A stretch of 64,000 nt of DNA. Origin: Lytechinus pictus (Eukaryota). Positions within the stretch are counted from its first letter, which is position 1. The number at the start of each line of letters is the position of its first letter. The notes beneath the pieces were generated by a model. It saw only the letters and a list, made by a program, of their open reading frames with translations, was not told the origin of the DNA and searched no databases. Position numbers and translations under genes: made by a program. The stretch covers positions 38,254,001 to 38,318,000 of the forward strand of contig NC_087245.1 of the NCBI RefSeq assembly GCF_037042905.1, given 5' to 3'. Positions 4,201 through 51,145 of the stretch are shown piece after piece.

Positions 4201-5984
4201 CTCACATTTTAGGGTCTGTCAGATGAGGGCAATGTATTATTTTTTTAGGCTTTATAATAATTCAAATTTCACCCCGATACCTGATTCATCCCCCCCCCCC
4301 TGCCAAATGTAAACATCAGACAAGTAGATACATGTAGGTGTAAGTTTTGAACAAACAATAAAAAAGAAAAAAAGCCAAAACTTCTTTTGAACCTGCACCA
4401 ATCTGTTTTACTTATTTGTCTCCTCTCTCACACAACATTTACAGACCAAGGTTTGATTCCCCTTCAAATTGATATAAAAATCAATTAAATTTAAACTTTC
4501 ATTTTCAAATTCTACTCTTCTTCATATCATATCCATGTCATACTATAATTTTAAAGCATTCCTGAGTTAGTGCTATTCTATACTGAAGGGTAAAGTGTAC
4601 TTTGGTGTGTACATCATTAACATATCAATATTACAACGATAGATTTATACGGTAATTAGGCTAATGATGTCATGTAACCACTTTCCTTTTCTTCAATTTT
4701 CAGGAAATCATAATCATTTCCTTGTTTCATAGATGTGTGTCAAAACATGTGTCCCTTGTAACAAAAGAAGTTTCAGCAATGTTTAACTTACACATTAAAT
4801 CAGTAGTCGATCCCAATTTACATTCTTGGAGAACAAAATTTGAATTTACATAATTTCCCATGATTGCTAAAAAAGAATAAGAGGAGAGATGACACCATCA
4901 GGGGCCTGTTGCAGAAAGAGGAGCGATTAAACGCAAGTAAAAATATCAAGCGCAAGTCCCGAATACGGTTGCTTCATTAGCTGAAAATCAAGTTGCACAA
5001 GATTTTTTGAGTTTGCGTTTGATCTCAACTCTTTCTGCAATGGGCTGTTTTCACAAAATATTCATTAGAATATTCATTAGGTGGGCTGATGATGTCACAT
5101 CCCCACTTTCCGTTTTCTTATGTTATTACATAAAATCATATTTTTTCCATTATTTCATACTTGTGTGAATAATACGTCTCCCTTATAATGAAATAAGTTG
5201 CAGCAATAAAAATCTAATGCACTAAATCAGTTGTCAATCCAATTTTTCTTGTTCTTGGAGGAAAAAAATTGAATAAACCTTAATTCATATAATAAAATAC
5301 AAAAGAACAAGTGGGGATGTGACATCATCAGCCCACCTAATGAATTTTCATGACGACTGTTTTCACAAAATTTTAAAATTCAATAACTTTGTTATTTAGT
5401 ATACGATTTTGATGAAATTTTTGGCATTTTGCTAAGTGAATTCTACTCTATTTACTAAACTTAAATACTTTCAGCCCAGACCATCCCTTTAAACATCACA
5501 TTCCATTTTCTTTGGTGACATGCATTAAATATATATAAAGGCAACTGTAAAAAGCAAATGTTTTAAAGAAATGTAGGTTTCCATAGAGATATAGATTGGC
5601 AAACACATGTATGCTACACACTGAGACAAGGTTTGATGACCTGATTTTTCACCTATGCATAGTTTTCGTAAATAAAACAAATAATGCAATGATTTTGGCT
5701 TGAGATGCTAGTGACAATGTTATGTAAAAGCACTAGCCTTGTGCTGTTGTAAATAACCTTGAGTCTCCTGCATCGCTATCAAGGCGCTCACACACGTGCA
5801 TGAATATTGCACCAATAGAATAGCCTTCTGGGTCAATATCATCAAGTGATTCAAGGCATTGTTAATACTGAACATCGAGTAGAGAACCTCAGTGAAGAGT
5901 GACTTTTGGGACATATGACAATCACTGGACAATATTTCTCATTTATTCTCAAGCTAGCTTCTTCAAAGTGACTCCTGGGTATTT

Positions 5985-15373: not shown

Positions 15374-16500
15374 CTGTAGCGTTGTTCTGATCGACGGCTC
15401 TTGCGAGCATGAACGATGATCACACATGTCGAAATGTCGCCCTCTAGCTAGCTCGGCAGCTCGTAGACTAGACATGACTGAGATCAGTGCTCAAACCAAA
15501 CTACGGAAATATTGTGGCGGATGGGGGGGGGGGGGGGCCGGGGGGGGGGGGGGGTCCGACCCGTACCAGTGCCCCCCATGTTTTATGCATTAAACATTAA
15601 AGATCAATGTTTCATACATAGCGATGTTCTCCCGGCATTTTGCCACGAGCCCCGCATTTAGCGGGGCTCTCCGCTAAAAAAAGCTATTAGAAAAATAATA
15701 ATAAAAAAAAAAAAAATCATTTTTATGTAAATAATTTGTATGCCGTCCTTGAAAGTCACAGCATATATTTTTAATGGAAATTAACAAAAGGGAGGAACTT
15801 CTTTTATGCTTGTCAAATTTTCCTCGGGAAAATGTGCTACCCAGCCTCGTAGAAAATCCTGGATCCGCCCCTGGTATCCACCTTTATGGTACAAACAGCA
15901 AAAAATCTGGGGGCGTCTTATAAGACTGAAGTTTAAATATAATTTAGCTTTAGTTTAACAAACTAGATAAGGACTAAAGCTTGAATTGATAACGGGGGCT
16001 TATAGGGGAAGTTCACCCCTGACTAAAAGTTTGCTCTAAAAATAGGCCTACCCGGGGAAGAATGGGTGAAAGTTTGAGGGGAAATCTATCAAAGATTAAG
16101 AAGATTGTAAGAATTTTAAGTTTTTTATTTATCACGTATATAAGAGCAGCTGCCCTATATAAAATGCATAAATTTTTAATGGCCCATGATATGATTAAAA
16201 AAATATTTCTTTCAAGAGCGGATGTGAACATTTGTGTTGATTCATTGTCTACGTGATATCAGTAACACAAAATTAATGATGAAGAGAAACTTATTTAAAT
16301 TGACTTAATTGTCTATTGATATCCTTTAGGTAAAATTCTAATTACTTTTAAAATCTTTTATGCATTTTCCTCAGACTTTAACGAATATCTTGCATTTTCT
16401 GCTATTTTTTTAGATCGTCAGAGTGAACTCCCCCCTTTTTTAAAGTTTTTGAAAAATGGCTTTTCTCAGGACTCTTTGCATAGAATCATACATGTATGCA

Positions 16501-18956: not shown

Positions 18957-19957
18957 ACAAGTGGAACACTTTTGGCAGTCTCGCCTGCATTGCACAATTC
19001 GATATAGCAGCAGTGCTGCCTTTGAAAACAGCTTATGAATGAATTATTCACAAAAGAAAACACTAATATAATAAAATATGTCCATTGACCCAAAATGACC
19101 TTTGACCATGATCATGTGGCATATGACATGCATGTGCAAAACGATCATTCATACAGTACTTGATTACCCTTATGTCTATGTTTCATGAACTAGATCTATT
19201 AACTTTCTAAGTTATGATACCAATTCAACACATACTCGCAACACGGCCAAATTTCATAGACCTTCTATGACCTTTGATCTTGGTCATGTGACCTGAAACA
19301 TGCTCAGGATATAAAGGGATACATGGTTGCTCTTATGTCCAAGTTTCATTATCTATATCCTAAAAGTTATGACAATTCCACACATACCCTCAACATGACC
19401 ATTTTTGTTGACCCTAAATGACCTTTGACCTCGGTCATGTGCCCTGAATCTTGCACAGGATGTTCAGGGATACTTGATTGCTCTTAGGTCCAAGTTTCAT
19501 GAACTAAATCCATAAAAAAATTTACGATTCCACAAATACCCCAACATGGCCAAAGTTCATTGACCCCAAGTGACCTTGGTCATGTGACCTGAAACACAGA
19601 CAAAATCTTCAGTGATGCACCATTACCCTTATGTCTAAGTTTCATGAACTAGGTCCATATACTTTCTAAGTTATGACATTTAAAAAACAACCTTGGTTAA
19701 GATTTTGATATTGATTCCCCCAACATGGTCTAAGTTCATTGACCCTAAATGACCTTTGACCTTGGTCATGCGACCTTAAAAATCGGGGAGGATATTCAGT
19801 AATACTTATTTCTAAGTTTCTTGAACTAGGTCCATTTACTTTGAAAGGTATGACATTTCAAAAACTTAACATTGGTTAAGATTTCAATGTTGACGCCGCC
19901 GCTGCAGTCGGAAAAGCGGCACCTTTAATCTTGCTCTGCTATGCAGGCGAGACAATA
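18957..19957. mobile_element. Helentron-associated element, second copy
   Basis: Same ends (gtctcgcctgcat...atgcaggcgagac) and tgacctttgacc repeats. Confidence 0.78.
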
Positions 19958-23100: not shown

Positions 23101-25294
23101 TCAATTTTTTTAGTCATTCAGAAGAGAAACACAAGCAAGAATTCATCATGTTTATTTCACAAGAAAAAATTTCCAATAAAAGAGTTATTCCAGGAAACTA
23201 TTCATACATTTACGATACACGTAAAATCCAGAATGTGCTCCTTAGTTCGTAGTACATACAATTAACAACAACAAAAGAGATTCTCCAAGAATTGAAAATT
23301 TGAAATTGACAACTGTGATTTGTAAAATTCCTAAACACTACATAAACAACTTTAAAAATTAATTAAAATCATGAGGGTATAGGGTAGCTTTACATATTGC
23401 TTGTTCATAACAGCTAATAAAACTAAAAAGTTGGACCTTTTAGAGAGAATTCTTTTTATGTTGTGACATAAACACCATATTAGAATTAATGATTTTTCTG
23501 GGCTCCTTTTTTAGATCACCAGACATTTTGCTAAATAGCATTACAGTTTATATTAGACCCTATGACCCGTATTCTGAACTCGGGTTTCAATCAAACCCTG
23601 GTTTAAAGTTGTGGTTCAACTATGGAGAGCCAATTGGGGCACAAATCCCTAAAGGTACACAGCCAATTTAGTAACTCGTAATGACACCCAAATTGTTCAT
23701 AATTGTGTGGGAATGATAACTGAGGTATTTTAAAGTATTTTTCCTCACTATGAAAGCAAAATGACACAAAATAGTAAACATAAGAAATATACTATAGAAA
23801 CAGAATGTTTGAATTTTCGGCTACCCATAATTTTAGCAGAGTTAGACCGTGGTCTAAGTTAAACCTGACATCAGAATACGGGCCTAAGGGAATTTCAAGG
23901 GGTTCTTTGTTTAGTCTTCCAGGGCATTTCAGGGGTGAATTCGCCCCGAGGCCCCATTTTATTTTTTTCCCTGGTTGTAATTCATATTCCCACCTTGATA
24001 ATGGAACACAAACTATACCTCGCATTCAACTAACATGTAAACAGATGAAAAGTGATGTGATGTATGCTCTTCGATTGTAAACGAACAGCTCAGCGGAAAT
24101 TTAGACTTGGAAGAGAAATTCATTTCTGAAGCAACAAACAAAACCAGCGTGCTTGTACACAACTACCGGTAACCCTTCAAATTTCCTCATTTGACAATGA
24201 ACGTGAAAACGAAAGGTACACAAAACAAATTGAGAGAAGACAAGGAGTGTGTATCATACTAGTAGCCCGGTACTGGTTGTTCACAGTGTCTCAGTATTCT
24301 TATGTGAATCTTGCACAAAGCCATTGCAGTACATGTAATACGTCATCACACCATTTCTTTTCCTCAATACTTTTTTTTCCCATTCCACGTCACGTTGGTC
24401 TTTTTGTCGTTGCAAAGTGTCTCTTAAACATCAATTGTCTTTGAAAACAAGGTCTTGTAATGTATTGTCCATTGTGTAATGTCTAGTTCTTGTTCGGCAT
24501 AACTGACACAAACGTTCAGGTCGAATATAAGAATGGACACCACCAACATCAACACTGGCTACTGATATTTGGGTACAAGTTTCACAAGAAAATAAAACTT
24601 AAAAATCAAGTGGTGCCTCTTTTAAAGTGTCTTTCTGTACTGATGTAGCCAATGTACAAGTTGTATCAGAATGACTGGATATATGATAAAGTTTTTGCAT
24701 TTTTCACTTGATTCGTTCCAAGAGGCTTCCCTTTAGTGCCTTAGTGCAGAAGTAACACCATTCCTTGTAATTTGTGTTGTCAAATGAAATAGCTGACCTA
24801 TGAAGTCATCCTTGATCATCCTTGTACTGAAATCTCCAAACATTGCTGTATTTTGAATAACCATCGCATACCAAAAGAAGCCCTTAGTTCAAATATCATG
24901 GCTTTCTGAAAGGAACTTGACAACTATCTTGGACAGAGTCTCCACAATCTAGCGCCTTCCTTCAGAGCTGAGCTTCCATCTGCTTCTCCAGTGCATTCAT
25001 CACACCTTCACTATTAATACAATGCATCCGTTTCTCCTGTCCGAAAGGGGCTGCCAATAGCACAAGACTTTCCATATCATTGAAAGCAAAATACAGACCA
25101 GAATTTATTCAATGTTTCCTGCACATCAGATAATTTTTCAATATTTTTTTTTCTTAGCAATTACAATTGAAGCAGATTTCTAAACCCTAGATGATAGGTT
25201 GTTTTAATAATATTTTATTTTAAAGCATGACATAATCTTCGACGACTCTGCAGAAATTAGCTGACAGCCATCTTACAAACCTCTCCAAGGGGGT
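20150..25294 (-). other. YTHDF: Probable long YTHDF 3'UTR (~5.1 kb)
   Basis: Mostly unique, U-rich sequence on the sense strand without ORFs; AATAAA at 20164-20169 (minus). Extent is inferred. Confidence 0.45.
23564..23885. mobile_element. Harbinger-like MITE in the putative YTHDF 3'UTR
   Basis: cccgtattctga...tcagaatacggg inverted termini. Confidence 0.6.
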
Positions 25295-25336
25295 TTAGTT
25301 TCGGTGACCTCCACGTCGGCTGCTACGGCTGTCTCC
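25295..25336 (-). CDS. YTHDF: YTHDF last coding exon ([13 protein letters not shown])
   Basis: cttgacag acceptor, phase 0, short basic tail, followed by long UTR-like sequence. Confidence 0.75.
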   Translation of the reverse strand, partial: GDSRSSRRGGHRN

Positions 25337-27981
25337 CTGTCAAGATTGAAAATAAAAACAACTGTTAAAGCAACAAAAAAAAATTCTTACATGTAAGTAA
25401 ACAAGGTGGTCCACTAACAAGTCTCGCCTTATTTTGCGATCAATATACATGTACATGCGAAATTACCTTTTGACACCTTTCATGTAAGCTTTGTAGGTAT
25501 ATTATTGTGACAATATCTTATGATTATTTGAATATGAATTTATTAACAAACTTCATTCATTTGAAATGAACATTTTGTTTTACAATACTATACAATGATA
25601 CTATAAACAAAAATATTCATAACGTGTCGTAAAAATCAATATACGGTACATCAATACATTTTCCATACATTTTTCATTTGTTCAAAGTTTTATATTTAAG
25701 GTAATGAGGACATGTTTAAAATAATGTGATTTATAAAACTGAAAACCTATAAAAAGAAACAAAGAATTATTATAAAATAATAAATAAAATCAACTGGATC
25801 AGCACAGCAATTTTGCCCTCACAACTGCCCAAATCACCCCTGAAATTCCCCCAAATACATGTTTTGTGGCAACCATTCCTTTCAGAGTCGCCCAAAGATC
25901 TGTCGCAAAAAAATATCCAAGATTATTTAGAAAAGAAATATTTCAAAGCGCCCTGCCATTGACAAATCATGGGGAAATTGAATCAATACAAAATGTGCAA
26001 AAGGCCAATTGACTTGCACAATATAATCCGTCCGTCATGAGAGCCCGTCGGACCAATGCGATAAAAGTTCGGACAGCACAATTTTGACCAAACTCTTGAT
26101 CGTTATTACTTCGGGTCATCGCAGTTCTCGTTTCCAACAACCCCAATTCCTGAACTCTTTAAAAGCAGGTCTCTTGTTGCTAAACCAAAATAAATAACCT
26201 CTATGAAGTTACATGTTTCAAAGTGAAAACACAGTTTACTTCTGGTCGGTTAGTCTACTAAAAATTGCTCTCCTATATTAGACCTCCCAGACATGCAGGC
26301 GTCTATTATATAACACCCCAGGCATGCAGCCGAATGAAAGATTTGAATCCCTTCTCTGTTCTGAGATTAGCCTTGATTTCCCCATGACTTGTCAATGGAA
26401 GGTCGCTTAAACTATGGCAGAGTAAGGATATTTGCTTTTACTGCATTTATAAGTGCTTGTTACCCCTAAAAAGCAGCCCTTAAAATGAAATAGCCCCCAA
26501 AATTTTACCACCAGTGACCACACTAATGTACATTTAGAAAAAAATCATACCCTGAATTGGACAGAATTATGAGAGCATGAACTGATTCACAGTGATTTAT
26601 GAGGACTAAATTGTGGAAATTAAAGTGCACGTATGTGATTAAACAGTTGATTCATTTGGGATGGAAAACGCATTGTTAAATTTTTTTATACAAACCTGTA
26701 AAAATATACAAAAAATATTACAAACTTTGAAAAAAAAAAAACTGGAAAGAACAATGATCATTTGTAACAAGTGTGAACACAATTGATGCAGAAATAAAGA
26801 AATGAGAGCAAGTTGAATAAGAAACTTCCAACGTTTTTGTATAAACTGACCAACAGAATAACAGGAAAAAAGATGACATTACATGTACAAGGTCTTTGCC
26901 GAACTTCGTTTGGGCGAGACAAAAGGTAGTATGCGACATACACGCTTGGCCGGGGCAAGTAAAAGTAAGAGTTGGGCAAGTGTTTTGAATTAAAGACAAA
27001 AACTACTTGCTTGAATCGGTCAAGCAAAATTCTCACAGTGAATTGAAATTTTATAAAGTTTTCCCATATTTCACAAGCAAAAATACAGAAGAGAGAGAAA
27101 GAAAAAACAAGTGGAATGCCTCTGGCCGTCTCACCTGCATCACGCGATTCAATATAGCAGCAGTGCTGATTTTGAAAACTACTATAACTCGCACAAGATG
27201 TTCAGTGATACTTGGTTACTCTTATTTCCACGTTTTATGAACTAGACCAATACACTTATAGAGATATGATGGCAATTCAACAAATACCCCCAATGTGGCC
27301 AAAGTTCTTTGACCTTGATCATGTGACCTGAAACTCGCACAGGATGTTCAGTGATACTTGATTACTATTATGTCCAAGTTTTATGAACTAGACCAACACA
27401 CTTTCAAATTTATGGCTGTAATTCAACAAATACCCCAATTTGGCCAAAGTTCATTGACCCTAAATGACCTTTGACCTTGATCATGTGACCTGAAACTTGC
27501 ACAGGATGTTCAGTAATACTTGATTACTATTATGTCCAAGTTTCATGAATCAGATCTATAAACTTTCAAAGTTATGATGGTAATTCAACAGATACCCCCA
27601 ATTCGGCCAAAGTTCATTGACCCTAAATGACCTTTGACCTTGGTCATGTGACGTGAAACTCATGCAGGATGTTCAGTGATACTTGATTAACCTTATGTAT
27701 AAGTTTCATGAACTAGGTCCATATATTTTCTAAGTTATGATGACATTTCAAAAACTTAACCTTAGGTTAAGATTTTGATGTTGATTCCCCCAACATGGTC
27801 TAAGTTCATTGACCCTAAATGACCTTTGACCTTGGTCATGTGACATGAAACTCAGGCAGGATGTTCAGTAATACTTGATTAACCTTATGGCCAAGTTTCA
27901 TGAACTAGGTCCATATACTTTCTAAGTTATGCTGTCATTTCAAAAACTTAACCTCAGGTTAAGATTTGGTGTTGACGCCGC

Positions 27982-28012
<31 letters not shown>

Positions 28013-31000
28013 GTCGCCGCCGCCGTCGGAAAAGCGGCGCCTATAGTCTCACTCTGCTATGCAGGTGAGACAAAAACCAAAGTTAACAACTTTCCTTGAT
28101 TTAAAATGCAAGCCAGTTTGCATAATTTTCTTTGATCTACACACGGCGTGTGTCTTTGTGTACCTCACTCAGCCACACACAGACATAGGCTGTGTTCAGA
28201 TTATCCCCTGCTTACCGGAACATCCCCTGGAATCTGTGTGTGGCTGTGTGATTGTTCCAGTCATTTAAAATTTTGATTTTAACCTCCTATAGTTTCTTTG
28301 TAATTAAGCCAATCATTTGAACATGCCTGTGAAAGATGTGTGTAAACTGGGAAGTTTGCTTAATCCCATCTCATTTTCATTGGCCTTTTTTGCCATTTTG
28401 TGACTTTGGATTCTGATTCTGAAACCAATTGATGTGAGGGGCTAAAAATTCTAGTCATATAGTATTCCTACGCTACATGAGCCAACTTCACAGCTCTGTA
28501 ACAACATGTACTCAACAACCTATTCCAATCATTGCATGAAATCTTTAACTTGAAAACAATCATTCAGCAAATTTAGGAAAAGGAAATACATACCCTTCTG
28601 TTAGAATCCTCCTCTTGTCGTTTCTCATAGTGGTTGAAATCATCAAAGATGCAGGTCTCGTGCTTGAAATTGTGAATGATCTTCATCACCTGCTTAGCTT
28701 TGTCCAATAACACTTCCTGAGTGTCACGAGAGTTGGTCACAGGCTTGTTATCATTGTTCTCCAGCCGTATGTGCCGAAGCGTGCTGTTTGGAACATCCTT
28801 CACATATATCCATCGCACATCAAAACGACCCTTCCACTTATCCTGGGCCCACACACCAGTGTTGGTTGTAGAGTCCACCTCAGACATCATTTCTGCCACT
28901 CCACAGAAGTGCCCACTACCGTTCACACTGTAAATAAGGTACACAGGACCTTTACTTTGGCGTTCCTTCATGGCAGCATCCAAGCGTTTGTTACCATGCT
29001 CGGTGCTGCACCAGATGCCATACTTAATGGAGCGATGGATGTCGTCTTCTGAGTAGCTCTTGATGATAAAGATTCGAGAGTTCTTAAGGTCAAGTGTAAA
29101 GTCAGTAGGATTATAGTCATTAATAGAACGTAATTTCTCCAATACCGGGCTATCTGTATCATTTTTCTGGCCCGGTACACCAGATATGGGTGCCAGACCT
29201 GCGGTACTGCTTTGGTTAGAAGATCTTTGTCCATAGCCACGATTCTGTCCATTCGAGTCCCACACTCTCGGTTGTTGGGGTTGCGGTTGCACAACAGCCT
29301 GAGGTCCCCTCCGTGGAACGTCGCTCGTTGGCAACACTGGCTTTTGCTGGGACACAGGCTGAGCTGAAGTGAGAGGAGGTTGAGAAACCTCAATCTTGGC
29401 AACTGGCTGAGGCTGGACATGTTGCACTTGCGGTTGAGGGTGAACTGGCATCTGCTGCTGTGGAGGTTGCATGGGAGGCTGCTGAGGTGGCACCTGGATA
29501 TGCTGCTGAGGAGGGATGGCAGCAGGAGGTTGGGGCTGGGCTTGTGCTGGGTTCTGAGGGGGAGAGGGCATGGTGGTGGCAGTCCCAGCTGGCTTAGGAG
29601 TGCCAGTTTTGTCGCAATTATTCCAAGTTCCAATAGTCATTGGGGGCTTCATTGTCGGAAGCTGAGTAGGTACGGGAGCATGGGATCCAGTCTTTGTTGT
29701 TTTCTTGGGTTGCGGCTTTGCAGGCTTACTAACGATGGCAGCCCACGATGTTTGCTTTGGCACTGCTGTGTTCTGAGGAGGGGGTTGTGCAGTTCCTCCA
29801 GCCCCAGCCACAGCCTGAGAGAAGCTGGGCCCTTGAGGCTTAGGAGGAATCACATCCTGCTTCAGAACTTCACGTCCAGCAACATTCATAGCAGTCTTAT
29901 CCATGGGAGCACCGATGTTCAGTCCAGACATTCCCAATTCCATTGCCTTCATTCCATGGGCTTTGCCATCCTGTGCGTCAAGTCCATTTAAACCCTGGCT
30001 GTAGTTACGCTGTCCAGTCATAGAAGTCGGGCCAGCCTGGTACCTAGGGTAGTCATAGTAAGAGCCAGTCGGTGCCTGGGCCTGTGGCTGGGTACGAGCT
30101 GTTCCCTGGGGTTGGGCAGCGGGAGCAGAGTTACTCGCCCAGGTCCCTGGCATAAAGTCTGCATTGGGAGGGAAAAAGTTGAAGGTCTGGTTCAAGTAGG
30201 GAGGGGTGGTGCCAGGTTGGTTGTAGTAGTCCGGAGCAGCATAGTTCGACTCATAGCTTGTGTAGTTAAAATTGTTAAAGGTGTCTCCACCTGTGGACCA
30301 TGTTGTTTCAGTTCCAGGAATAGAGTACGATGGGAAGGAGTAAGGTGACTGGTAGTACGTTGTTGGCATATAGGAATCCTGTGCAGCCATACTCGGTGCC
30401 GAAGAGTACCCCTGTATTGGAACAAAACAAAAAAATATGTTAACTTTTCAGTATTTTTCAAAACTTTCTTTTCTACAGCATGTCCCAAAAATAAGGTCCC
30501 TCTTGACATACGGTTGAATTATTTCTGAAATAAATAACTATTATTCTCAATTAAATGTGCAGTAATAGAGAGCTCGTTACATATTCTCAATTCTACAAAA
30601 ATCTAATTGGTCTCACACCTCAGCAGTTTTAATAGCAGTAGTGCTTTTCACCCCATTCCAAGTTTGCATGCTGCACTGCTGTATGCTCTGCAGTGTCAAG
30701 CAAGTCAACCCCACACTGATTCCCCTATTAATCATCAAACAAAATCTTCATGCTGGATGCTCCTTGCCCTTCTGATCACGATAATGTTTGAGATATGATG
30801 AACTTTGTCAGATAAGGGTAATTATGTCCCTGCTCAGATCCTGGAAGTTAAAATGGGGGTTGACATGCTGGAGACAATGCAGTAATACAGCAGTGCTGCA
30901 AACTTGGAATGGGTAGGAATGGGCTGAAATGTACCGCTGTTACTGAACAGAATGTGTAAACCAGTGAAGTGAGGTAAGTTAAAAAAAAATCAAATGAGCT

Positions 31001-34000
31001 CTCTAGTCTCTACAATGTAGTTATGTACATTTGAGAAGATAATGCACTTTGGAATTAAATGATCTGTATTTCAGAGGGACATTTTTTGGGGGGATGTGTT
31101 GCATTGATTTGATTTTACAAGTATTTCCTCCTCATGACATGGGCTGTCAATTATAACTTTAACGTTCAATCCATAAAGCCAATAATTATCTGGGGCCCTC
31201 TCTCTGGTATACATGTTCTATTTTTCTTCAAAAACAGCAATTGGAGTAGTGTCATATTTAAATACAAACTTGGTGTTATTGGATCATAAATCAACAGATC
31301 AAGATTATACATGTATCTTGAAAAAGAGACTCAAGTTTTCTAAAATGCCAATTCCATGTTCTACATGTCGGGACACATACTGTACAATACATCATTCAAT
31401 ATAATAAAGCACTATACATATTGTTTGTTGAAAAAGGGTTTATGAAATATAATGCTTCCTGATAGAGAGAAAGTAGGAAATCTCATTGGCCACCCCCAAA
31501 AGATGCAAAATGAATGAGGAAAGCATCACTATTAAAATATCTATATTTTTTAATGATCTTTTACAACTTGCTCATTTCTATTTTATTGTTCTTATTTTAC
31601 CACTTCGTTATTATTATCATTGCCTAAGTACAGGTACATGTAGTCTTGCATTTCACATTTCTTATCTCAGTATTTAAAAATGTTACTCTTTTTGAATGTT
31701 TATTGTACAGTACATGAGATGAGTGTATTAATTGTTTGTACTTTGAATGCATGACCAATTCAACCATTTGGCTGCGACAGCAACTCATGTTTTCAATGAA
31801 CCTTGAATTGAAATATCTATTCCACAGTTCAGATTGGTTCATGCATACATGTACAATACAATATTGCATTTCCACTAATGCCACAAAATATTAGATACAT
31901 GTATTAGCTGAATACTGTATTCAGCTGTAAACTACTAATTTGTGGCTTTACACGCATATTACATATACATGGCTCATCTTGCATTAGGAACTTGAATGCC
32001 AGGTGGGTGTTTCATAAAGCTGTTCGTAAGTTAAGAGCGATTTTAAGAACGACTGGTGATCCTTTCTTACGCGCTAAAACATTGTCAATGGTGCATACCA
32101 TTTACCAACAGAAAGGATCACCAGTCTTTCTTAAAGTCGCTCTTATCTTACGAACAGCTTTATGAAACACCCACCAGGATTCATGTACATGTATAAGTCT
32201 TCTTACACAGCTCTTAATGAACATGTTACGTTGCCAAATGGCAGTTTACATGTAGGTAGTTACTGTGATTATAGTATCACAGTACATATACATGTATGTG
32301 CAAACCATTGATAGCAAACCGCCTGCTTCATCAGAGCTACAATACATTTAATTGTGTGCAATTTGAATCAAATAATTGAAATGCAGAGAAATCATAGTTA
32401 GGACTAGTGAGTACGTAGTACCAGCCATTCTTCGAAAAATGTAAACTCATGCCACTGAGTACATTACAATTTACAATCCATGAGCAAGGGAGAAAAACAA
32501 ATTAGAAGGGGTGGGGTGCCCCAAGCCTCCAGAGATGTTTTTCTTTCAGAGAAATCTGTTGATTTTGGTAATTTGATCCAATTCATACAGTACTACAGAC
32601 TGTCTTTTATTATTTTCATTATTTCTGCAGGTATTGGGACAAGTCCACCCCAACAAAAAGTTGATTTGAATAAAAAAAAGAAAAATCCAACAAGCATAAC
32701 ACTGAAAATTTCATCAAAATTTGATGTAAAATAAGAAAGTTGTGATATTTTGCTTAATGTCACAAAATAATGGATAAGAATTAAAAAAAGTTACCTGATG
32801 GGCGGGCTGGTTGGACTGCATGTAGCGTTCTAGTTCTCCTTCAGCAACATTCTCCTTAGGGTTTATCGGTCCATTTGGTACTAAGAGGCAAAGGAAAAGA
32901 AATTAAGCCATTTGATAATGGCAGACATGTATGCACAGTACATGCATGGATGACTTCAATACAGTTTGCATAAATCTATTAATGATAATAAACGAATGGA
33001 ACGCTTCTGGCAGTCTCACCTGCATTACGTAATTCAATATAGCAGCAATGCCCACTACGAAAACAACTAAGATAAATAATCATTCACAGAAACATCATTC
33101 ACATGATAATAACATACTAGATTCATCGACAATAAATGACCTTTGACCTTAATCATGTGACCTAATAATACTCATGCAAAAGGATCACTGATATTTGATT
33201 ACCACTACATGTATGTGTAGGTCCATGTTTCATGAACTAGATCCATAAACTTTCCAAGTTATGATGGCATTTCAACAAATACCCCAAACATGGTCAAAGT
33301 TCATTGACCATAAATGACCTTTGACCTTAATTATGTGACCTTAAATTTGAGCAGAATGTTTAGTGATACTTAATTTTTCTTATGACCTACTTTCATGAAC
33401 TAGATCCATATACTTTCAAAGTTACTATATTTCAAAAACTTATGTGTAACTTTGGTTAAGATTTTGATGCTGAGTGAGCAGAGTCCCCAACATAGTCTAA
33501 GTTCATTGACCCTTAATGACCTTTGACATTGGTCAATACTCAGGCAAGATATTCAGTAATACATATGTGAAATGTGAATAGACATGTACATAGGAAGTTG
33601 CCATCAGTTATATTGTTTTAAAGTATTGTCTACATGTACAGTAAATGAACATCTGAATGTTCTTCACTACATGTAAATTACATACAGTGTGTACATGTAC
33701 ATGCACTTGTGTGGTTACCTGTACATGTGGAAGAATTATTATTAAAACTTAAGGATTATTGACTTTAAATATGTAAAATAAATTCATAATTGTGACTTAG
33801 GTAGTTACATGTACAATTTCTGATTCTTAATTCTTACCTTGGCTCCTCTGACTTCTTGGTTTCTGCAAAAGAAGTGCAAATTAAAAATTAAATTACAAAA
33901 GTAATAAATTTTGATATTTACATGTAGTGTTTGTTTTGAAGAATGATCTACAGACCTTACATACAGGGTTATCTCAAAAGTTGAGTCAACTACATGTACA

Positions 34001-37000
34001 TATAATCTGACTATGTACATCAGGGCTCTGTCTTACAAAGACTTACGATTGATACAATCAATCGTAAGTATGGAAATCCACCAGTGTCAAATTTTTTTCT
34101 ACAGGAAATTTGCCAAAATGTCCTTTGTAACAAAGGCAAACACACCAAACTTGTCAAGAAATCAATGAATTTATGAAAATACATCATATATCTACATATA
34201 TTTTTGAACAAACATGTATTTTTAGATGTGGGCGTTGCTGGCTTTCCATAGTTGAGTTTGATCACATCGATCGCAACTCTTTGTAAGATGGGGCCCATTT
34301 GTATAAAATTATGCAAATTTGATGTGAACTGATATCAGTCTTTTTAAAGTGAAAGAATATTTAAGATAGAGATTGGAAATTAAGAAAATTATTTTTAATC
34401 AGCCTTTCTGATTGGTCATGAAAATGTATGATGAAGTAGTGAAATTAATTAAGAAAAAATATATTTTACTTAGATATTTATATCTAATGTACATGTAGCA
34501 GGGTCACAGAATGGTTTTGAAAGGGGGGGGGGTTGAGTCGGATGACATCATGACAGTTGACGCAAAAATCAGACTCAGATGGTGATGTTTATATTTTTAC
34601 ACGGTTTGGGGGGAAAAAGTGGGGGCTCCTCCTCCCCCGGTTCCATGGCCCCAGCTAATTGTTGCATACCTTTCCAAAGACAGGCAAGCTGGATAACATG
34701 TTCAGTATTTTGTTATTTAGACGACTGATGTGGAAAACTACATGTAGTTTCATGTAACCGTTACTGTTCAAGAACCCCCCCCCCCCCATCCTGCTTGTTT
34801 CAAAAGGTTGCGTTAACGAACCACTCTGATCTCAACACAACACTTCCAAGACAAGTGAGGGCTTAGCTCAAAGGGTTGCTTTACTTGCTTAGCATATCGC
34901 ACCGCACCACAAGGCAACACTGTAAGTGTATTATGGACCACATTTTTTCAGACAAAAGGCAGAAGAGAGATACAGATTTTTTTCAATTAGAAAGACATAT
35001 TTTCTCAAAATAATCAATTACTGAGTAATTACATTATTCATACAATGTACAACGGTACAACCCCCATCCTTGTTCTGTATGAATTTGTCAATATTTAATT
35101 ATTGTTTAAGATGAAAAGTATTGAATGGTGTCATTACTTACAACTTTGAATGACCAAAGATCTGAGAAATTAATATTGGGGATCAGACATACCTGAACAT
35201 GTACATATACAATATAAATTTAGAAGATCTGTTTAATTACACCAAAAATACTGAATTGAAATGAATGGTACTAGATCCAGTAATACTATGAATCATCATT
35301 AGGGACGCACCATGAGATATCTGGGAGGGGGGCTGAAAAAATCTTGACTGGATATATGAGCAAAAAAAAAAAAAAAACCTTGGTCCACTGACAAATCATC
35401 TGAAAGGTGCAAAAAATACTAAAACTTGTCTCAATGGAGTAAGAAAAAAAAGGGGAAAAAAAATTGCTCAAAGAAAGAAAAAAAAAGATTTGCATCAACC
35501 CAAACTTCCAGCCCCCACCCCCTGGGTATCTAATGGTGCATCCCACCTGGATATCCTGATCATGTATCTACAATACAGTCTTATATTTGTTATTCAAACC
35601 TATTAATCAGGACTACAAGATCACTTACAAAACGGTATTACAATCATGGTCCTGACAGGAGGCCATCATGATGGAAATATTACATAAAAGATCCATCAAC
35701 CTTATTTGTAACACTTCAGAATGTACAGTGTGGGTAAGACAGGGACATTTCATTAACATACAGTATGTACATGACATGTACACATACATGTACCTTTGCA
35801 AACTACATGTAGGACTGAGTCAAAATGTTTAATAGCCGTTCAAAGTAACGACCATTAAAAGCATGAACGTATTCTTATTTTGACAAACGTAGTGACTGGT
35901 GACCGTATGGTGACAGGGGGGGGGGGGGGGGGGGACAGGGGTGGCTCAGAAGTTCGAATCAATGATTCAAATACTAATGTCATGGCTTATAAATCAGCAA
36001 ATATATTTTCAAGTCTACATTGAATGAAATTGCAATATGCCTTGCCAGAATATGGAATTTATATCTTGGTCCTACATATAGACATTCACGTTAGTACATG
36101 TACATCTAGTGACTGTTCGACATCAACCAAAAGTTACACTGTACATGTATATTTCATGGAAGTAAATGTGAAAATTTAGTAGCTTCCAGAGAGTTTTTTT
36201 TTCTTTTTCTCCCTACCATCATCTCAACAAACCACTGTTACATGTAAAACATTTAAAAAAAATAAACATAACGATCCAGGCCTAATCCCTAACTGTCTGG
36301 GAATAATAACTAAAAAAGTTCTTCATCATTAAAACAATTATGATAAGAAATCACAATATAAATAAAATAATAACATTTTCTGCTTCCCAAAATTTTAGTA
36401 CGAAATCAGACCATTGCCTATATTTTACTGTTGAAGCTACATGTAAACTGGACTTCAGATTTCAGAATATGGGCTACAAAGTTGGCCTATAATATCTCAA
36501 ATTTTTTTAATTTCATAATGATACAGATATTACTTTTCATTCACATGCACTCATATTAGCAGAGCACAATACCACACTAAATATCTAATAAACATCCAAT
36601 TGTTAAAGGAGAATGAAACTCTTGGAGCAAGTTAGCTTTTGTGAAAGCAGAAAAATCAAAGAATAAGATCAACAAAAGTTTGAGTAAAATAGGACTAGAA
36701 ATAGAAGAGTTATGAACATTTGAATGTCGAGATCACTAATGCTATGGAGATCCCTCTGTTGGCAATGCGACCAAGATCTATGATGTCACAGATGAACAAC
36801 TCTCCCCTTTTGGACACTGAAAATATACCCCAAAACATCCCTTTTTGCTCATTCTAATCATATGACAAACGATTCATCAATGATATAATGTTGTGAAACC
36901 TCTGTACTTGTCCTGTCATAAAGAGAACACCTCACCTTGTGATAGACTCGATAAAAGTGAGAATATAAGTGAAATAAGTACTAAAGTAATGAGGGAGTTG

Positions 37001-38481
37001 TACATGTACGTGTGTGACATCACAGATCTTGGTCGCATTGCCAATGAGAGGATCTACATGGCATTAGTGATCTCAATATTCAAATGCTCATAACTTTCTT
37101 ATTATTCATTCAATCTTCCTCAAACTTACAATATGTTTCTTTGATTTTTCTCTTTGATATGGATTCAGCTGGTTTCAAGGGTTTCATTCTCCTTTAATGA
37201 AACTACTCAAACTACATGTAGTATAGAAATGTTCAAATCCTGCTCTTGTTATTACGTGTAGCTGATAATTCTTTCAATTATGTAGATCCTATCCTGTTCT
37301 GGACTTCTAGGGAATAAATAAGAAAATATTAATTGGCATTTTTCATATTGATGTGGAATAATGAAAAAGTCAAAATTGAAAAAATAATACCAAAGATTGA
37401 AGATTAATTCATGACAAGTTACAGTTTCATGATAATGGATTTAAAGAGGAAGTTCAACCTGATTAGTTTGTTATAAATAGAACATTGAATTAAAAATACA
37501 ATTTGAAGAAAAATTCATTGGTGAAAGAATGATGAAAGGTGAAAAAAAAGAATTTTGAGAATTGTGAATTTGGATTTAAGATGTCATCTACATGTATGAC
37601 CAACTCCCCAACCACATGAAAAACAAAAATATTTTTATTATAGAAGAGGGCTGTGGGTATGAAATGCTACGTCTGATGATATATCCATCGCACAATTACT
37701 AGATCTGTTAGTGTTAGGCCCCGACTCCATCAAATTTTTTTGGGAAATATTACATTTTCGATATTTGTTTGGATGATTGGTTATGGAGCTGCCATCACAA
37801 AATAAAAACTTTGAAATTCTTAATTCATAATACCTTCACTAATATTTTTCTGTTTTTAACTTTTTATTGAAAATAACTTCTCATCTGGTTGAACATTCCC
37901 TTCACATTTGCACTGTCCAGTTCAGTTGCATTTCATCATGAACAGCCAGCTGATCAATTCAAAACACATGTGATTGAGTGACTCTGCACTGAGATCCGAG
38001 TGAGACAAGTTTTTCTTTGCAACAGTAGATCCACAATAAAGCAACAACACAATTAAACTATCTCTAGAATAATCTCATTGATATCTTAACATGAACATAA
38101 TCATACTTTTAACTTAAGTAGGCCTACAGTTACATTTCATTTGCATTTAGCTTTCGTCTGGATTAGTTCTTGATAGCTTGACATGGTAAAATACACACGG
38201 CTGTCATGTACACTGTACGCATGCATTTGTTACATACAGGCATGTCAACACAGAGCCTGCATTACGTTCGCAGATATCAGTGGAGCTCCAATCCTCTCTC
38301 AGCTCACACACAGATACACACACACTGCGATGCAATGCTCCATTACGTGGTGGTTTGGGCACATAGAGGTGTACATGGCCGGCGAGTGTGCCATGTCATG
38401 TACGTACACATCAATGCATAATTTGGTGATAGAGAAACAGACGGTGAAACGAACCTGTTCAACTCCTGCCGCCGCAGACAT
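25295..38481 (-). CDS. YTHDF: YTH domain family m6A reader (YTHDF1/2/3 ortholog), join(38481-38455,33862-33838,32880-32795,30411-28594,25336-25295), 665 aa
   Basis: YTH domain [25 protein letters not shown]...GVWAQDKW...[12 protein letters not shown] with three cage Trp. Y/P/Q-rich N-terminus. The small 5' exons mirror vertebrate YTHDF. All introns GT-AG; 1998 nt. Confidence 0.95.
27106..28076. mobile_element. Helentron-associated (HINE/Tsp/pearl-like) element with ~160-bp tandem repeats
   Basis: SubTIR gtctcacctgcat / atgcaggtgagac, terminal hairpin, (GCC)n microsatellite, five central repeats, inserted into an A-run with no clear TSD. Confidence 0.8.
28594..30411 (-). CDS. YTHDF: YTHDF large exon 4 (low-complexity region plus YTH domain), 1818 nt
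   Basis: ORF 28573..30390; acceptor cag|GGG TAC; donor AGG|gtatgt. Confidence 0.97.
30480..31100. repeat. Degenerate long inverted repeat (old MITE) in YTHDF intron 3
   Basis: Arms such as cccattccaagtttgca / tgcaaacttggaatggg and gtcaacccc / ggggttgac. Confidence 0.65.
32003..32174. mobile_element. 172-bp hairpin MITE (Harbinger-type)
   Basis: 3-bp TSD CAG; ~65-bp near-perfect inverted arms gtgggtgtttcataaagc...gctttatgaaacacccac. Confidence 0.8.
32795..32880 (-). CDS. YTHDF: YTHDF coding exon 3
   Basis: [29 protein letters not shown], similar to vertebrate VQNG...DFEPYL; tag acceptor and gtaac donor. Confidence 0.88.
32990..33560. mobile_element. Truncated Helentron-associated copy in YTHDF intron 2
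   Basis: gtctcacctgcatt start plus about three repeat units. Confidence 0.7.
33838..33862 (-). CDS. YTHDF: YTHDF 25-nt microexon 2 (KPRSQRSQ)
   Basis: ttttgcag|AAACCA...CAAG|gtaaga; restores phase between exons 1 and 3. Confidence 0.82.
34023..34296. mobile_element. Harbinger-like MITE
   Basis: gggctctgtcttacaaaga...tctttgtaagatggggccc inverted termini. Confidence 0.6.
36607..37193. mobile_element. TTAA-flanked MITE (Kolobok-like), family A copy 2
   Basis: Same termini and body as 13882-14465. Confidence 0.88.
38455..38481 (-). CDS. YTHDF: YTHDF coding exon 1 (MSAAAGVEQ)
   Basis: ATG at 38481, CAG|gttcgt donor, 27 nt; resembles vertebrate MSATSVDxQ. Confidence 0.85.
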
Positions 38482-47002: not shown

Positions 47003-47093
47003 TTAAACCCGACCAACGTGCTGAGAACAGTCATCCTTTTTCAAATTGTTTTAATTGTTGTCTCCCTTTCTTCATTCATTTATACTTATCATC

Positions 47094-47957
47094 ATGTCGA
47101 CTGACGATCAATTTTCTTCCGACTCGACAGCTAGCTCTTCTATTTCCAATGTTCAACTTAAGCTTCCTCCCTTCTGGCCAAATGATCCTACCATTTGGTT
47201 CGTCCAAGTTGAAGCTCAATTTCTAACAAAGGGCATCAGCAAACAATCAACAAAATTTGCATATATCGTTGCATCACTTGAACCCGAATATGCTCAGGAA
47301 ATCAGAGATCTCCTCATTTCTCCCCCAAAGGAGAACCCATATGATGTTTTGAAATATCAGCTCATCCAACGAACATCAGCATCCGAACAAAAACGGCTCC
47401 ACCAACTACTGATTTTGGAGGAGCTGGGAGATCGAAAACCCTCTCAGCTGCTCCGAAAAATGAAACAGTTGTTGGGAACCAACACTCTTGAGGAGAACAT
47501 TCTGAAACAACTATTCCTGCAGAGGCTGCCAACCAATATTCAAGTTATATTGGCTTCAACCCGAGATTCCATGGAAATCGAGAAGCTTGCCGACTTAGCC
47601 GACAAGATTCTCGAAACCCATTCCCCAATTCATCACTCTCGGGTAGCACATCTGTCTCCCTCTTCTTCTTCCACCACACCCTCTTCAAATCCTGAAATGG
47701 CAGAGATGAAAGCTCAGATCGCACAGCTTTCCCTTCTTGTCCAAAATGTGTCGGCGCAACAATCCGATCGGAGCCGAGGTCGCAGCCGTGAGCGAGGCTC
47801 TCGCCAGAAAGAAAGCCGTCAGCGTAGCAAGAGTCCTCAATCACATGTCGGAGGAGACTGCTACTACCATTGGCGTTTTGGAAAGGGGGCAAAGAAGTGC
47901 ACTCCCCCTTGCACTTTCAACCAGACCAACCAGGGAAACGACAAAGCCAGCGACTAG
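47094..47957 (+). CDS. gag: Gag (CsRN1-type, C-X2-H-X9-C-X3-C knuckle)
   Basis: [22 protein letters not shown]-terminus, [15 protein letters not shown]-rich stretch, [18 protein letters not shown]. Confidence 0.92.
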
Positions 47958-50900
47958 CGGCGACAAGTCCAACTGGCAGCAAACAACAAAGTCGCCTTTT
48001 CTACATCACTGATAGGAAAACTGGAATTCGTTTTTTGGTCGACACAGGAGCTGAAGTTAGCGTTCTTCCTCCATCAAAAGCCGAAAAGCATCATCCTTCA
48101 TCAAAATTCTATCTACAAGCAGTAAATCGCTCAAGCATTACGACTTATGGAGAACGAAGCCTGACTCTCGACGTCGGCCTGCGTCGAGCTTGCAGATGGA
48201 TTTTCATCATTGCTGATATTCCTATTCCTATCATCGGGGCAGACTTCCTTCATCACTTTGGTTTACTTGTGGATGTGCGCAATCTCAAGCTCATCGACTC
48301 TTCTACCAATCTATCTATTACTGGCATCCTTTCTTCATCTCCTTCTATCAGTCCTATGTTTCTAAAGCCAGAAAATCAAGCTGCCTACAAATCTATTCTC
48401 GACAAATTTCCTGACATTACACGCCCTGTGTATAAGGAGGCTGAGATCAAGCACTCCGTCACCCATCACATTGTGACGAAAGGCCCTCCTGTTTCATCCC
48501 GTCCTCGTCGCCTAGCAACCGACAGGTACAGTATCGCGAAGGCGGAATTCGATCACATGCTGGAACTAGGCATCATTCAACCGTCTAGCAGCAATTGGGC
48601 ATCTCCACTTCATATGGTGCCCAAGAAAACACCCGGAGACTGGAGACCGTGTGGAGACTATCGTGCACTAAATAGGAATACAGTGCCCGACAAATATCCC
48701 ATTCCCCATCTCCAAGACTTTACATCTGCCCTAGCAGGCAAGCGAGTTTTCTCAAAACTCGATCTCGTTCGAGCATATCACCAGATCCCTGTCGATCAAA
48801 CAGATGTACACAAAACAGCCATCACCACACCCTTTGGGTTATTTGAGTTTGTACGCATGCCTTTTGGGCTACGTAATGCCGCACAAACTTTTCAACGATT
48901 CATTGATGAAGTAACCCGTGGTCTTCCATTTGTGTACGCTTACATCGACGATCTGCTCATCGCTAGCGAAAATGAAGAGGAGCACAAGCAACATCTCCAG
49001 CTACTTTTCGCTCGACTCTCGAAATATGGCGTCGTCATCAACCCAGCCAAGTGTGAATTCGGCGCATCTTCTCTCACCTTTCTCGGACACATTGTTGATG
49101 AGAACGGCATCCGCCCTCTGCTCGAGAAAGTCAAAGTCATCAACAATTTCCCTGTTCCTGATTCTCTTCGCAAACTCAGAGAATTTCTAGGACTAGTCAA
49201 TTTCTATCGTCGCTTCATTCCTGATTGTGCAACTCTCACTCAACCACTCACCGATCTATTGGCATGCAAGCAGAAAAACAAAGCAATCCATCTCGATGAT
49301 GCAGCCCTCAATGCATTCAACTCAGTGAAAACAGCTCTCGCTCAAGCTACTCTCCTTTCACACCCAAAACCTAATGCCCCACTCTGCATTATGGTTGATG
49401 CATCAGATTTTGCTGTTGGAGGTGTGTTGCAGCAACACATTGACGATGACTGGCAACCCATCGCCTTCTTCTCAAAACGCCTGCAGCCAGCTGAGACAAG
49501 ATATAGCACATTCGGACGTGAACTTCTCTCTGTGTATCTCACTATTCGTCACTTCAGACATGCACTTGAAGGACGACAATTCTTCATCTATACTGATCAC
49601 AAACCTCTCACTCATGCCTTTAATGCTAGACCTGACAGGTATTCACCACGCGAAGTCAGACACCTAGACTACATATCTCAATTCAGCACAGATATAAGGC
49701 ATATTAGTGGAAAACACAATGTAGTGGCAGACGCTCTATCTCGCATGGAAATCAACTCCCTCACTTCAACTCCTACCATTGATTTCAATGCCATCGCCGC
49801 TGCCCAGGAGGTTGACGAGGAACTCAAACAACTCACTTCAACCTCGTTCAAACTCGAACCTCTACCTCTTCCTATTTCTGACTCTACTATCCTATGCGAT
49901 ACTTCAACTACCAATCCTCGACCTTACATCCCATCTAAATTCAGACGAGTTGTATTTGATGCTCTTCACAACCTATCTCACCCTGGCATCAATGCTACCC
50001 AAAAACTCATCACAGACAGATTTGTTTGGCCTGGAATCAACAAAGATGTTCGAAATTGGACCCAAACTTGCATACAGTGTCAACGTTGTAAAGTACACCG
50101 TCACACCAAGACACCGATAGGTACTTTTTCAACACCTGATGCTAGATTCGATCACATTCATATCGATCTCGTGGGACCACTTCCTCCTTCAAATGGCAAT
50201 GCATATCTTCTCACATGTGTTGACCGTTTCACCCGATGGCCTGAGGCAATGCCTATTCCCGACATATCAGCAGAGACTGTTGCCCGAACATTCATTTCAC
50301 ACTGGGTATCTCGCTTCGGTGCTCCCTCAACCATCACTACCGATAGAGGTCGACAATTCGAATCTTCCCTCTTTCAAGCTCTAACTCATCTTCTTGGTAG
50401 CTCTAGAATTCGAACTACATCTTATCATCCTGCATCCAACGGACTGGTTGAGCGCTTTCATCGGCAACTTAAAGCGTCACTCAAAACTACCTCTTCTCCA
50501 CGATGGACTGAAACTCTCCCTCTCGTCATGCTTGGAATTCGAACTGCAGTCAAATCTGATTTGGGATGTTGCGCTGCTGAACTGGTTTATGGATCAACTT
50601 TAAGATTGCCAGGTCAGTTTGTAGCACCTAATCAGAATGATTGTGATTTGGACCCTAGCAACTACATACATCGACTGAGAAAACAAATGGAGAACCTCAA
50701 ACCTCAGCCTACTCGTGTCCAGAATCGCAAACCACAAGTCCACCCAGATCTCACATCATGCACCCATGTCTTTGTGCGTCATGATGCAGTCAAGAAACCC
50801 CTTCAACCACCCTACGATGGCCCATATCAAATTATCAAGCGAGCTGATAAGTTTTTCACCATCCTACTCGAAGGAAAGCATGAAACTATCAGTCTCGACC

Positions 50901-51145
50901 GTCTGAAACCAGCATATTTGGAATCACCCATTTCACCAACCGTTCCAACCACTGTTCAACCAAGCCTATCTACTCATGACAATCCTAAACCTTCTCAAGT
51001 GACTACTACACCAACCACTAAGCCTCCGCCCCCCTCCATCACTCCTTCTTCATCATCATCTACCGAGCCTGAAATCAGACAAACTCGTTCGGGTAGAAAG
51101 GTGCATTTTCCAAAGCGTTTTGTTCAAGTTTTTCATTTTAATTGA
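47933..51145 (+). CDS. pol: Pol polyprotein (protease, RT, RNase H, integrase), in the -1 frame relative to gag
   Basis: [10 protein letters not shown]; YIDD; VDASD; HHCC (HNLSH...CIQC); DDE (HIDLVG, TDRG, VERF); GPY module; no stops. Confidence 0.96.

Follow-up and report, generated by a model that had tools for sequence, protein, structure and literature searches.

Why should one eight-letter word stand 25 times in 6.29 kb of intron? The word is TACATGTA, and the introns belong to the YTHDF gene of the sea urchin Lytechinus pictus, which lies in a stretch of 64,000 nt (NCBI RefSeq assembly GCF_037042905.1, contig NC_087245.1, positions 38,254,001 to 38,318,000 of the forward strand). This whole stretch is called the window, and positions are counted from its first letter unless another locus is named. 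In an initial annotation, made from the letters alone, the copies were proposed to be footprints of a Tc1-type transposon that repeatedly enters and leaves housekeeping-gene bodies, possibly guided by gene-body chromatin. The analysis described here supports the core of that proposal: the copies are very probably scars of cut-and-paste round trips made by TA-targeting elements of the IS630-Tc1-mariner type, with the YTHDF unit scarred far more heavily than its surroundings. What the scars say about targeting is less firm, and is taken up after the evidence for their origin.

A field of octamers in the YTHDF introns

The window contains 35 copies of TACATGTA, whereas 100 dinucleotide-preserving shuffles gave 1.03 on average and never more than 4. 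An exact-word count over the window recovered every one of the 25 copies that the initial annotation had placed in a field at 31308–37596, with starts at 31308, 31635, 31846, 31896, 32186, 32247, 32289, 33206, 33631, 33668, 33692, 33806, 33919, 33991, 34490, 34739, 35785, 35804, 36095, 36142, 36239, 36438, 37001, 37213 and 37589. To the left of the field are 10 additional copies, within 280–26880, and 37597–64000 holds none, in agreement with the annotated picture of scattered copies left of 38 kb and an empty 39–64 kb. A comparison of flanks likewise bore out that the copies are dispersed in unrelated sequence and are not tandem. Within the field TACATGTA is the top 8-mer (25 observed, 0.92 expected under a second-order model), and no other octamer is as over-represented in the 296 kb sampled, which comprise the window, the flanks of a miniature inverted-repeat transposable element (MITE) and loci of Strongylocentrotus purpuratus and Lytechinus variegatus. 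The enriched unit is the full octamer: T and A flank 25 of the 35 ACATGT hexamers within the field, and no base is preferred past the eight letters except where 6-bp tandem doublets produce such a preference.

The word is abundant throughout the genome, with 224,046 copies in 811.7 Mb (0.276/kb), which is ~8 times the expectation from base composition by our arithmetic (~36% G+C). The field stands another 14-fold above this genome-wide density; at the genome mean its 6.29 kb would hold 1.74 copies, and the probability of at least 25 is 1e-20.

YTHDF was mapped on the minus strand with a coding span of 25298–38481, using a Pfam YTH match (7.6e-50), tblastn of the L. pictus protein P0122 and peptide look-ups for exons 1, 2 and 5. 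Residues 18–46 and 46–652 of P0122 are 100% identical to the translated window. The coding parts of the exons lie at 38455–38481 (exon 1, with the ATG at 38481), 33839–33865 (exon 2, peptide look-up), 32795–32881 (exon 3, tblastn), 28594–30414 (exon 4, tblastn, with the YTH domain) and 25298–25336 (exon 5, peptide look-up). The YTH domain was found by Pfam in a large minus-strand open reading frame (ORF) at 28573–30390, whose best protein relatives are echinoid YTHDF proteins. No TACATGTA falls within any located YTHDF coding exon. Because of this exon map, all 25 field copies (13 in intron 1, 5 in intron 2 and 7 in intron 3) are intronic, as are three further members of the same field in intron 4 (25388, 25446 and 26880, together spanning 25388–26887); the 13.2-kb coding span holds 28 copies in total. 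The CpG observed/expected ratio is ~0.3 across YTHDF, rises to ~1 just upstream of exon 1 and stays at ~0.7–1.2 over the upstream, non-genic side (38482–64000), which has zero TACATGTA and five copies of another palindrome, TAGGCCTA.

Six-base insertions at TA and a resident Tc1 family

The window was compared with the YTHDF locus of two other urchins, L. variegatus (L068) and S. purpuratus (L067). The L. variegatus locus is colinear with window 20.1–39.4 kb (16,765 aligned bp, 7.4% mismatch) and yields 172–200 clean indels, depending on the flank-identity cut-off. Their lengths show a bulge at 6 bp (1 bp, 50; 2 bp, 25; 3 bp, 21; 4 bp, 12; 5 bp, 14; 6 bp, 26; 7 bp, 10; 8 bp, 7). In 14 of the 26 six-bp indels, TA in one species corresponds to TA-NNNN-TA in the other, with CATG as the inserted core in 11 cases, CCGG in 2 and CGTG in 1. 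Six of the CATG events belong to the window lineage and five to L. variegatus, and each lineage has one CCGG event; in YTHDF, ~9% of all clean indels, and around half of those of 6 bp, are scars. An exact 6-bp indel is the commonest type of lineage-specific octamer difference, and the shorter allele at scar junctions has a single TA in orthologous and paralogous alignments alike. These comparisons show that TACATGTA originates as a gain of six bases at TA and has been gained in both sister lineages. The 11 clean TA to TACATGTA indels are the excess of CATGTA insertions between sister species that an excision origin had led the initial annotation to expect.

For instance, the window-lineage scars at 25446–25453, 32247–32254, 34739–34746 and 36438–36445 face a TA and a 6-bp gap in L. 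variegatus. That at 36095–36102 faces GTA and a 6-bp gap with one adjoining substitution, and several other window sites (31308, 35804) show the same gap plus an adjoining substitution. The scar at 24330–24337, downstream of the last coding exon, can be polarized with the outgroup: since L. variegatus and S. purpuratus both lack it (reading GCAGTA... there), the event was an insertion. Window-lineage 6-bp insertions at TA also produced a variant scar, TACGTGTA, at 37253–37260 and a scar of a second type, TACCGGTA, at 24164–24171; L. variegatus independently gained a TACCGGTA-type scar at a different site.

Paralogous copies were examined as well. A piggyBac-type MITE of ~592 bp with a TTAA target duplication occupies 36603–37197 in intron 1 and is absent from L. 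variegatus. Its octamer at 37001 reads TGTA-CATGTA-CG in the window copy and in copy L003, against TGTA|CG in 28 of 30 copies, and since L003 has it too, the source copy of the MITE probably carried the scar already. A local duplicate within L009 pairs CACTATAT with CACTACATGTATAT. The tandem paralogues L044–L047 align in exons alone, and their single alignable octamer site is the product of a 2-bp deletion. A second copy of the MITE lies at 13877–14470; its arms are ~200 bp, its copies (L002–L030) are 96–97% identical and one subfamily has an extra TA (CATAAAG to CATATAAAG). A search with an 8-kb query gave 18,065 first-look candidates, and the 40 best-scoring matches all came from this MITE.

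TAGGCCTA and TACCGGTA are further TA-XY-Y'X'-TA octamers in excess. Genome-wide, TAGGCCTA has 66,473 copies (~7 times expectation) and TACCGGTA has 20,388 although it contains CpG. The window holds 8 copies of TAGGCCTA against 0.2 expected (3907, 16043, 38119, 39993, 40118, 42553, 52147 and 58722), mostly where TACATGTA is absent; the one at 38119–38126 is shared with L. variegatus and is the first of six at 38119–58729, in the upstream region devoid of TACATGTA. TAGGCCTA is also in excess at the S. purpuratus locus (7) and at a crinoid locus (4, with 0.19 expected). This parallel excess is consistent with several element families that differ in their termini. A TA|GG...CC|TA MITE (window 5078–5339, L018) was considered as a source of TAGGCCTA and rejected: what look like its flanks are conserved too, and inverted between copies, which places the TA inside a larger repeat. 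At reverse-complement position 27977 of L067, S. purpuratus has TACATGTAGGCCTA, in which TACATGTA and TAGGCCTA have one TA in common, the arrangement that a scar made at another scar's TA would leave. The canonical footprint of Sleeping Beauty is TAC(A/T)GTA. Words of this type are 4-fold denser in the field, and window-wide they are not enriched, with 12 against ~14 expected from base composition by our arithmetic, a weak signal.

A candidate agent resides in the same genome. A search with Pfam DDE_3 gave 729 candidates, of which 150 were scored and all matched; more than 100 of these loci have stop-free frames of ~364 aa with near-equal scores. The six copies read measure ~1.9 kb, are ~99.5% identical to one another and have inverted terminal repeats of ~200 bp (83% identity); their ORF carries a paired-like helix-turn-helix, HTH_Tnp_Tc3_2 (7.5e-19) and DDE_3 (4.9e-20), with no further domain. 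All nine ends read conform to TA|CACTACTC...GAGTAGTG|TA, with TA at each, and the CATGTA letters added at scars are the terminal bases of these elements. Tc1 families with CA ends are presumably the agents of the scars, and the maker may be this young family, as opposed to older relatives with CA ends or their MITEs. The initial annotation had envisaged a family with CA...TG ends and a chromatin-reader domain; an abundant and intact TA|CA...TG|TA family is indeed present, but Pfam detected no chromatin-reader or tether domain in its transposase of 347–364 aa. Many young Tc1 copies occur in head-to-head inverted pairs, and spacings between DDE matches recur at 1,645 or 1,678 bp (for example C6:20053360/20055005 and C1:5457591/5459236; also L031:1084–3432), which suggests that a composite inverted dimer has itself been copied.

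In the mechanism proposed, TA would be duplicated upon integration of the transposon. On excision, the transposase would cut the 3' ends at the junction of element and TA but the 5' ends two bases further in, within the element; a CA-3' overhang would then stay on each donor flank, and lossless end joining would give TA-CA-TG-TA, a net gain of CATGTA per round trip. TA is the target of Tc1/mariner-type elements (PMC5481204), and footprints produced by non-homologous end joining equal the 3' overhangs (PMC7827188). This traffic would have been continuous in the Lytechinus lineages, would have proceeded independently in Strongylocentrotus and would be far heavier inside the YTHDF unit than upstream of it, with YTHDF scars held in balance between new scarring and mutational decay at ~2/kb.

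Regional pattern, turnover and competing explanations

The density of TACATGTA inside YTHDF exceeds that of the flanks in all three echinoids: 2.12 vs 0.14/kb in the L. pictus window (p = 9e-14), 2.40 vs 0.25/kb in L. variegatus (p = 3.5e-9) and 2.57 vs 0.25/kb in S. purpuratus (p = 1.6e-8). It falls sharply at the YTHDF transcription start, upstream of which there are 0 copies in 25.5 kb of L. pictus, 0 in 10 kb of L. variegatus and 1 in 10 kb of S. purpuratus. When S. purpuratus is aligned with the window, only exons and a few blocks match; its introns are unalignable and no intronic site can be aligned. The 25 intragenic copies of S. purpuratus are therefore independent of those of Lytechinus, and the field recurs at the YTHDF locus instead of being a set of inherited sites. 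The YTHDF locus of the crinoid Antedon has zero TACATGTA in 25 kb, which shows that YTHDF genes do not carry the word as a conserved feature. The top octamer of the Antedon mediterranea locus, ATGGCCAT, belongs to a 30-bp tandem satellite downstream of YTHDF (L069:17865–19256).

Sites turn over within this pattern. Mismatch between L. pictus and L. variegatus is 8.6% across the transcription unit, and an ancestral octamer would remain intact in both lineages with probability 0.49. The two species have 12 TACATGTA sites in common beside a similar number decayed or rearranged, which fits neutrality at this survival; positional conservation above the neutral rate was not found in the comparison with L. 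variegatus. Each lineage has gained five to eight new CATG scars in 10.9 aligned kb (0.12–0.16 per kb per 1% lineage divergence), and octamers decay at ~8% per 1% lineage divergence. Together these rates predict an equilibrium of 1.5–2.0/kb, with 2.1–2.6/kb observed. Because the prediction comes near the observation, the density is a steady state of continuing traffic and not the product of a single burst or the trail of a locally hopping element.

The best-surviving alternative concerns this regional pattern alone. It accepts the scars as real and attributes the field to local hopping of one element, or to the greater age of the introns, instead of targeting of the unit. Local hopping is typical of Tc1/mariner elements, much of 38.5–64 kb is lineage-specific or young (a Ty3/gypsy-type element, for example) and the genome-wide density of TACATGTA is clumpy, with a dispersion index of 1.59. 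However, S. purpuratus YTHDF is equally scarred though its introns contain no sequence alignable to those of the window, and the new events of both Lytechinus lineages are scattered across 11 kb. The upstream flanks of the three species, pooled, contain 1 copy in 45.5 kb against ~12.6 expected at 0.276/kb (our arithmetic). In view of the three-species result, sequence age or local hopping is unlikely to be the cause.

A second alternative, clearly less probable than the first, is that the six bases were inserted without any transposon, either by slippage of a TACATG hexamer or by error-prone repair after a TA-specific nuclease. TACATGTA doublets at 6-bp spacing are common, and 2 of the 11 new CATG events, at 19752 and 19437 of L068 (L. 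variegatus, reverse-complement positions), lengthen a scar already there; such doublets may come from slippage or from re-insertion at the scar's own TA. Most new CATG events, however, are at isolated TAs with no similar sequence adjoining, where there is nothing to slip on. The inserted letters are, moreover, the termini of resident Tc1 elements, and the parallel CCGG- and GGCC-core scars are easier to reconcile with several element families than with a single nuclease.

Point substitution, mainly through the deamination of TACGTGTA or TACACGTA at a methylated CpG within a methylated gene body, is very improbable as the source of the octamers. It would be in keeping with the CpG-poor field (~0.3) and with the distribution in 235 kb of other L. 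pictus DNA, where TACATGTA has 0.49/kb at CpG observed/expected <0.8 and is 8-fold rarer, at 0.06/kb, where the ratio is >=0.8 (p = 0.001); TAGGCCTA is free of this depletion. An orthologous CpG-decay state was found once (TACACGTA in the window vs TACATGTA in L. variegatus, reverse-complement position 7940 of L068), and at four additional sites the two species differ by one other substitution. Yet the CpG precursors are no commoner than other octamers of their kind, with 3 in the whole window, CpG decay does not explain why T..A flanks are required, and it is the exact 6-bp indel that dominates among lineage-specific differences. The single-substitution differences are what the decay of older scars should produce at 0.49 survival, and CpG observed/expected does not predict TACATGTA density across the flanks of 28 MITE copies (comparison sample, rho -0.01). 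This explanation is largely refuted, and the excision reading, which the initial annotation had set against CpG decay, withstands a comparison in which such decay accounts for a single site.

Just as hard to credit is a functional palindrome kept dense by selection, acting either as the DNA site of a dimeric protein or as an RNA element within introns. In its favour, the word is a perfect palindrome, keeps to the transcription unit in the three urchins and has one site (20673) conserved to S. purpuratus within a conserved block. The idea is at odds with turnover at the neutral rate and shared sites that fit 0.49 survival, with new sites arising by insertion at arbitrary TAs, with the empty crinoid locus and with genomic copies (224,046) too numerous for a selected site.

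Several observations weigh against the reading of the octamers as Tc1-type scars concentrated in the YTHDF unit. The 2-nt stagger that it uses is that of C. elegans Tc1 and Tc3. For Sleeping Beauty and Mos1, reviews give a stagger of 3 nt and a scar that consists of the overhangs (PMC7827188; PMC5481204). The five young Tc1 copies examined lie in A-TA-T contexts, whereas the bases next to scars are G/C-enriched. The YTHDF alignment contains six large lineage-specific insertions, none of which has the form of a TA|CA...TG|TA element, and no element was found in that alignment at a site scarred in the other species, although a single locus makes this weak evidence. The young TTAA MITE shows no 6-bp bulge: an anchored-gap scan found 320 copies with a net +1 to +12 in a 173-bp span, and +6 occurs in 5 of the first 100, which were tallied. 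Some octamers arose otherwise, by two substitutions (L017:765), by a 2-bp deletion (L046:1829) or by CpG decay (the one L. variegatus site); these other origins are a minority, in line with an expected background of about one tenth. Among indels, the excess of scars in the unit (13 scars and 127 others) over the downstream block (1 and 47) is not significant (p = 0.12), and the CpG-poor neighbouring stretch at 2–12 kb has just 2 copies of TACATGTA.

The last point bears on how widely the pattern extends. Thirty loci centred on RRM-domain exons have a mean of 0.43 TACATGTA/kb, equal to the flanks of the 28 MITE copies. From this mean, the flat relation to CpG in the MITE flanks and the sparse 2–12 kb stretch, it follows that gene bodies in general are not all targeted. 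The proposal that scars accumulate in housekeeping-gene bodies consequently stands for YTHDF, where confinement recurs in three species, but not as a general rule. Likewise, the suggestion of guidance by gene-body chromatin finds a counterpart in the bias toward the YTHDF unit, but the transposase carries no reader and low CpG alone does not predict density. The regional bias may stem from integration preference, not from repair or selection. Tentatively, and with somewhat less than even confidence, Tc1-type transposons may prefer certain germline-methylated transcription units and shun unmethylated flanks, in a very high and long-lived flux, conserved between Lytechinus and Strongylocentrotus, that would hold scars at an equilibrium of ~2–2.5/kb and supply about half of 6-bp indels; the families that leave GGCC and CCGG scars would favour other chromatin.

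Other features of the window are recorded here. A Ty3/gypsy-type retroelement at 47055–51145 on the plus strand has an uninterrupted pol frame of 1,091 aa (protease, reverse transcriptase, RNase H and integrase) with a DUF7041 ORF upstream of it, and contains no TACATGTA. A repeat family of 150–190 bp, dispersed and tandem (TGACCTTTGACCT...GTTTCATGAAC), is found at 19267–19552, 27307–27975 and 33100–33560. Reads matched to 31300–37299 (three RNA runs labelled L. variegatus and one contig run) are mostly repeat-derived, with a depth of 0–8 in unique intron; the TGACCTTTGACCT...GTTTCATGAAC repeat reaches a depth of 600–1,400 among the RNA-seq reads mapped on the field. DNA read runs matched just the MITE part of this stretch. 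Long runs of G or C occur at 15523–15554 and elsewhere, with GGGGGGGG 85 times and CCCCCCCC 40 times, far above expectation, and two runs of 192 N, at 11249–11440 and 11726–11917, represent assembly gaps or masked stretches.

Related systems and implications

The urchin scars resemble the footprints of C. elegans Tc1 and Tc3 and of Sleeping Beauty in that a duplicated TA is combined with terminal bases of the element after a staggered cut and end joining, and in that those elements end in CA...TG and target TA. Unlike the 3-nt product of Sleeping Beauty, they keep 2+2 bases, and unlike any of these footprints they are germline-fixed, number in the hundreds of thousands, stand at an equilibrium of gain and decay and are concentrated in certain transcription units. 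The footprints of hAT elements (Ac/Ds) and of the P element are also short insertions that remain at the donor site following excision and repair. In contrast to the urchin scars, they are hairpin-derived or consist of 8-bp duplications, and because they depend on flanking sequence they cannot yield one fixed genome-wide word.

Lentiviral integrase is tethered by LEDGF/p75 to H3K36me3 chromatin, which directs integration to gene bodies. The unit-wide bias and the sharp promoter edge in the urchin resemble that system in possible working, not in membership, and the urchin Tc1 transposase differs in having no evident tether or reader domain. For piggyBac, excision is reported to be seamless (PMC7351741). 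In the internal eliminated sequences of Paramecium, TA-bounded DNA derived from Tc1 has entered and left gene bodies on a massive scale (PMC3464196). Unlike the urchin scars, these sequences are retained in the germline; a domesticated piggyBac transposase excises them from the somatic nucleus precisely and without a scar.

Excision footprints are normally known as rare lesions in reversion assays. Tc1-type footprints as such are well known; in the literature searched, no description was found for echinoderms of the octamer excess, of genome-scale Tc1 scars or of confinement to transcription units. In this urchin scars form a dominant part of genome composition, so past cut-and-paste transposition can be counted after the elements themselves have left, and its rates and regional preferences can be measured by simple alignment of sister species. 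The scars also matter to the study of intron evolution and to indel models, given their share of the indels in YTHDF. Sleeping Beauty integration is near random (PMC7827188), and Tc1/mariner elements are usually treated as near-random vectors; if the bias toward the unit does reflect integration targeting, it would be new for this superfamily. L. pictus is under development as a genetic model with Minos, a Tc1/mariner element (PMC11361634), and the presence of over 100 intact Tc1 transposase genes native to this species is relevant to that use.

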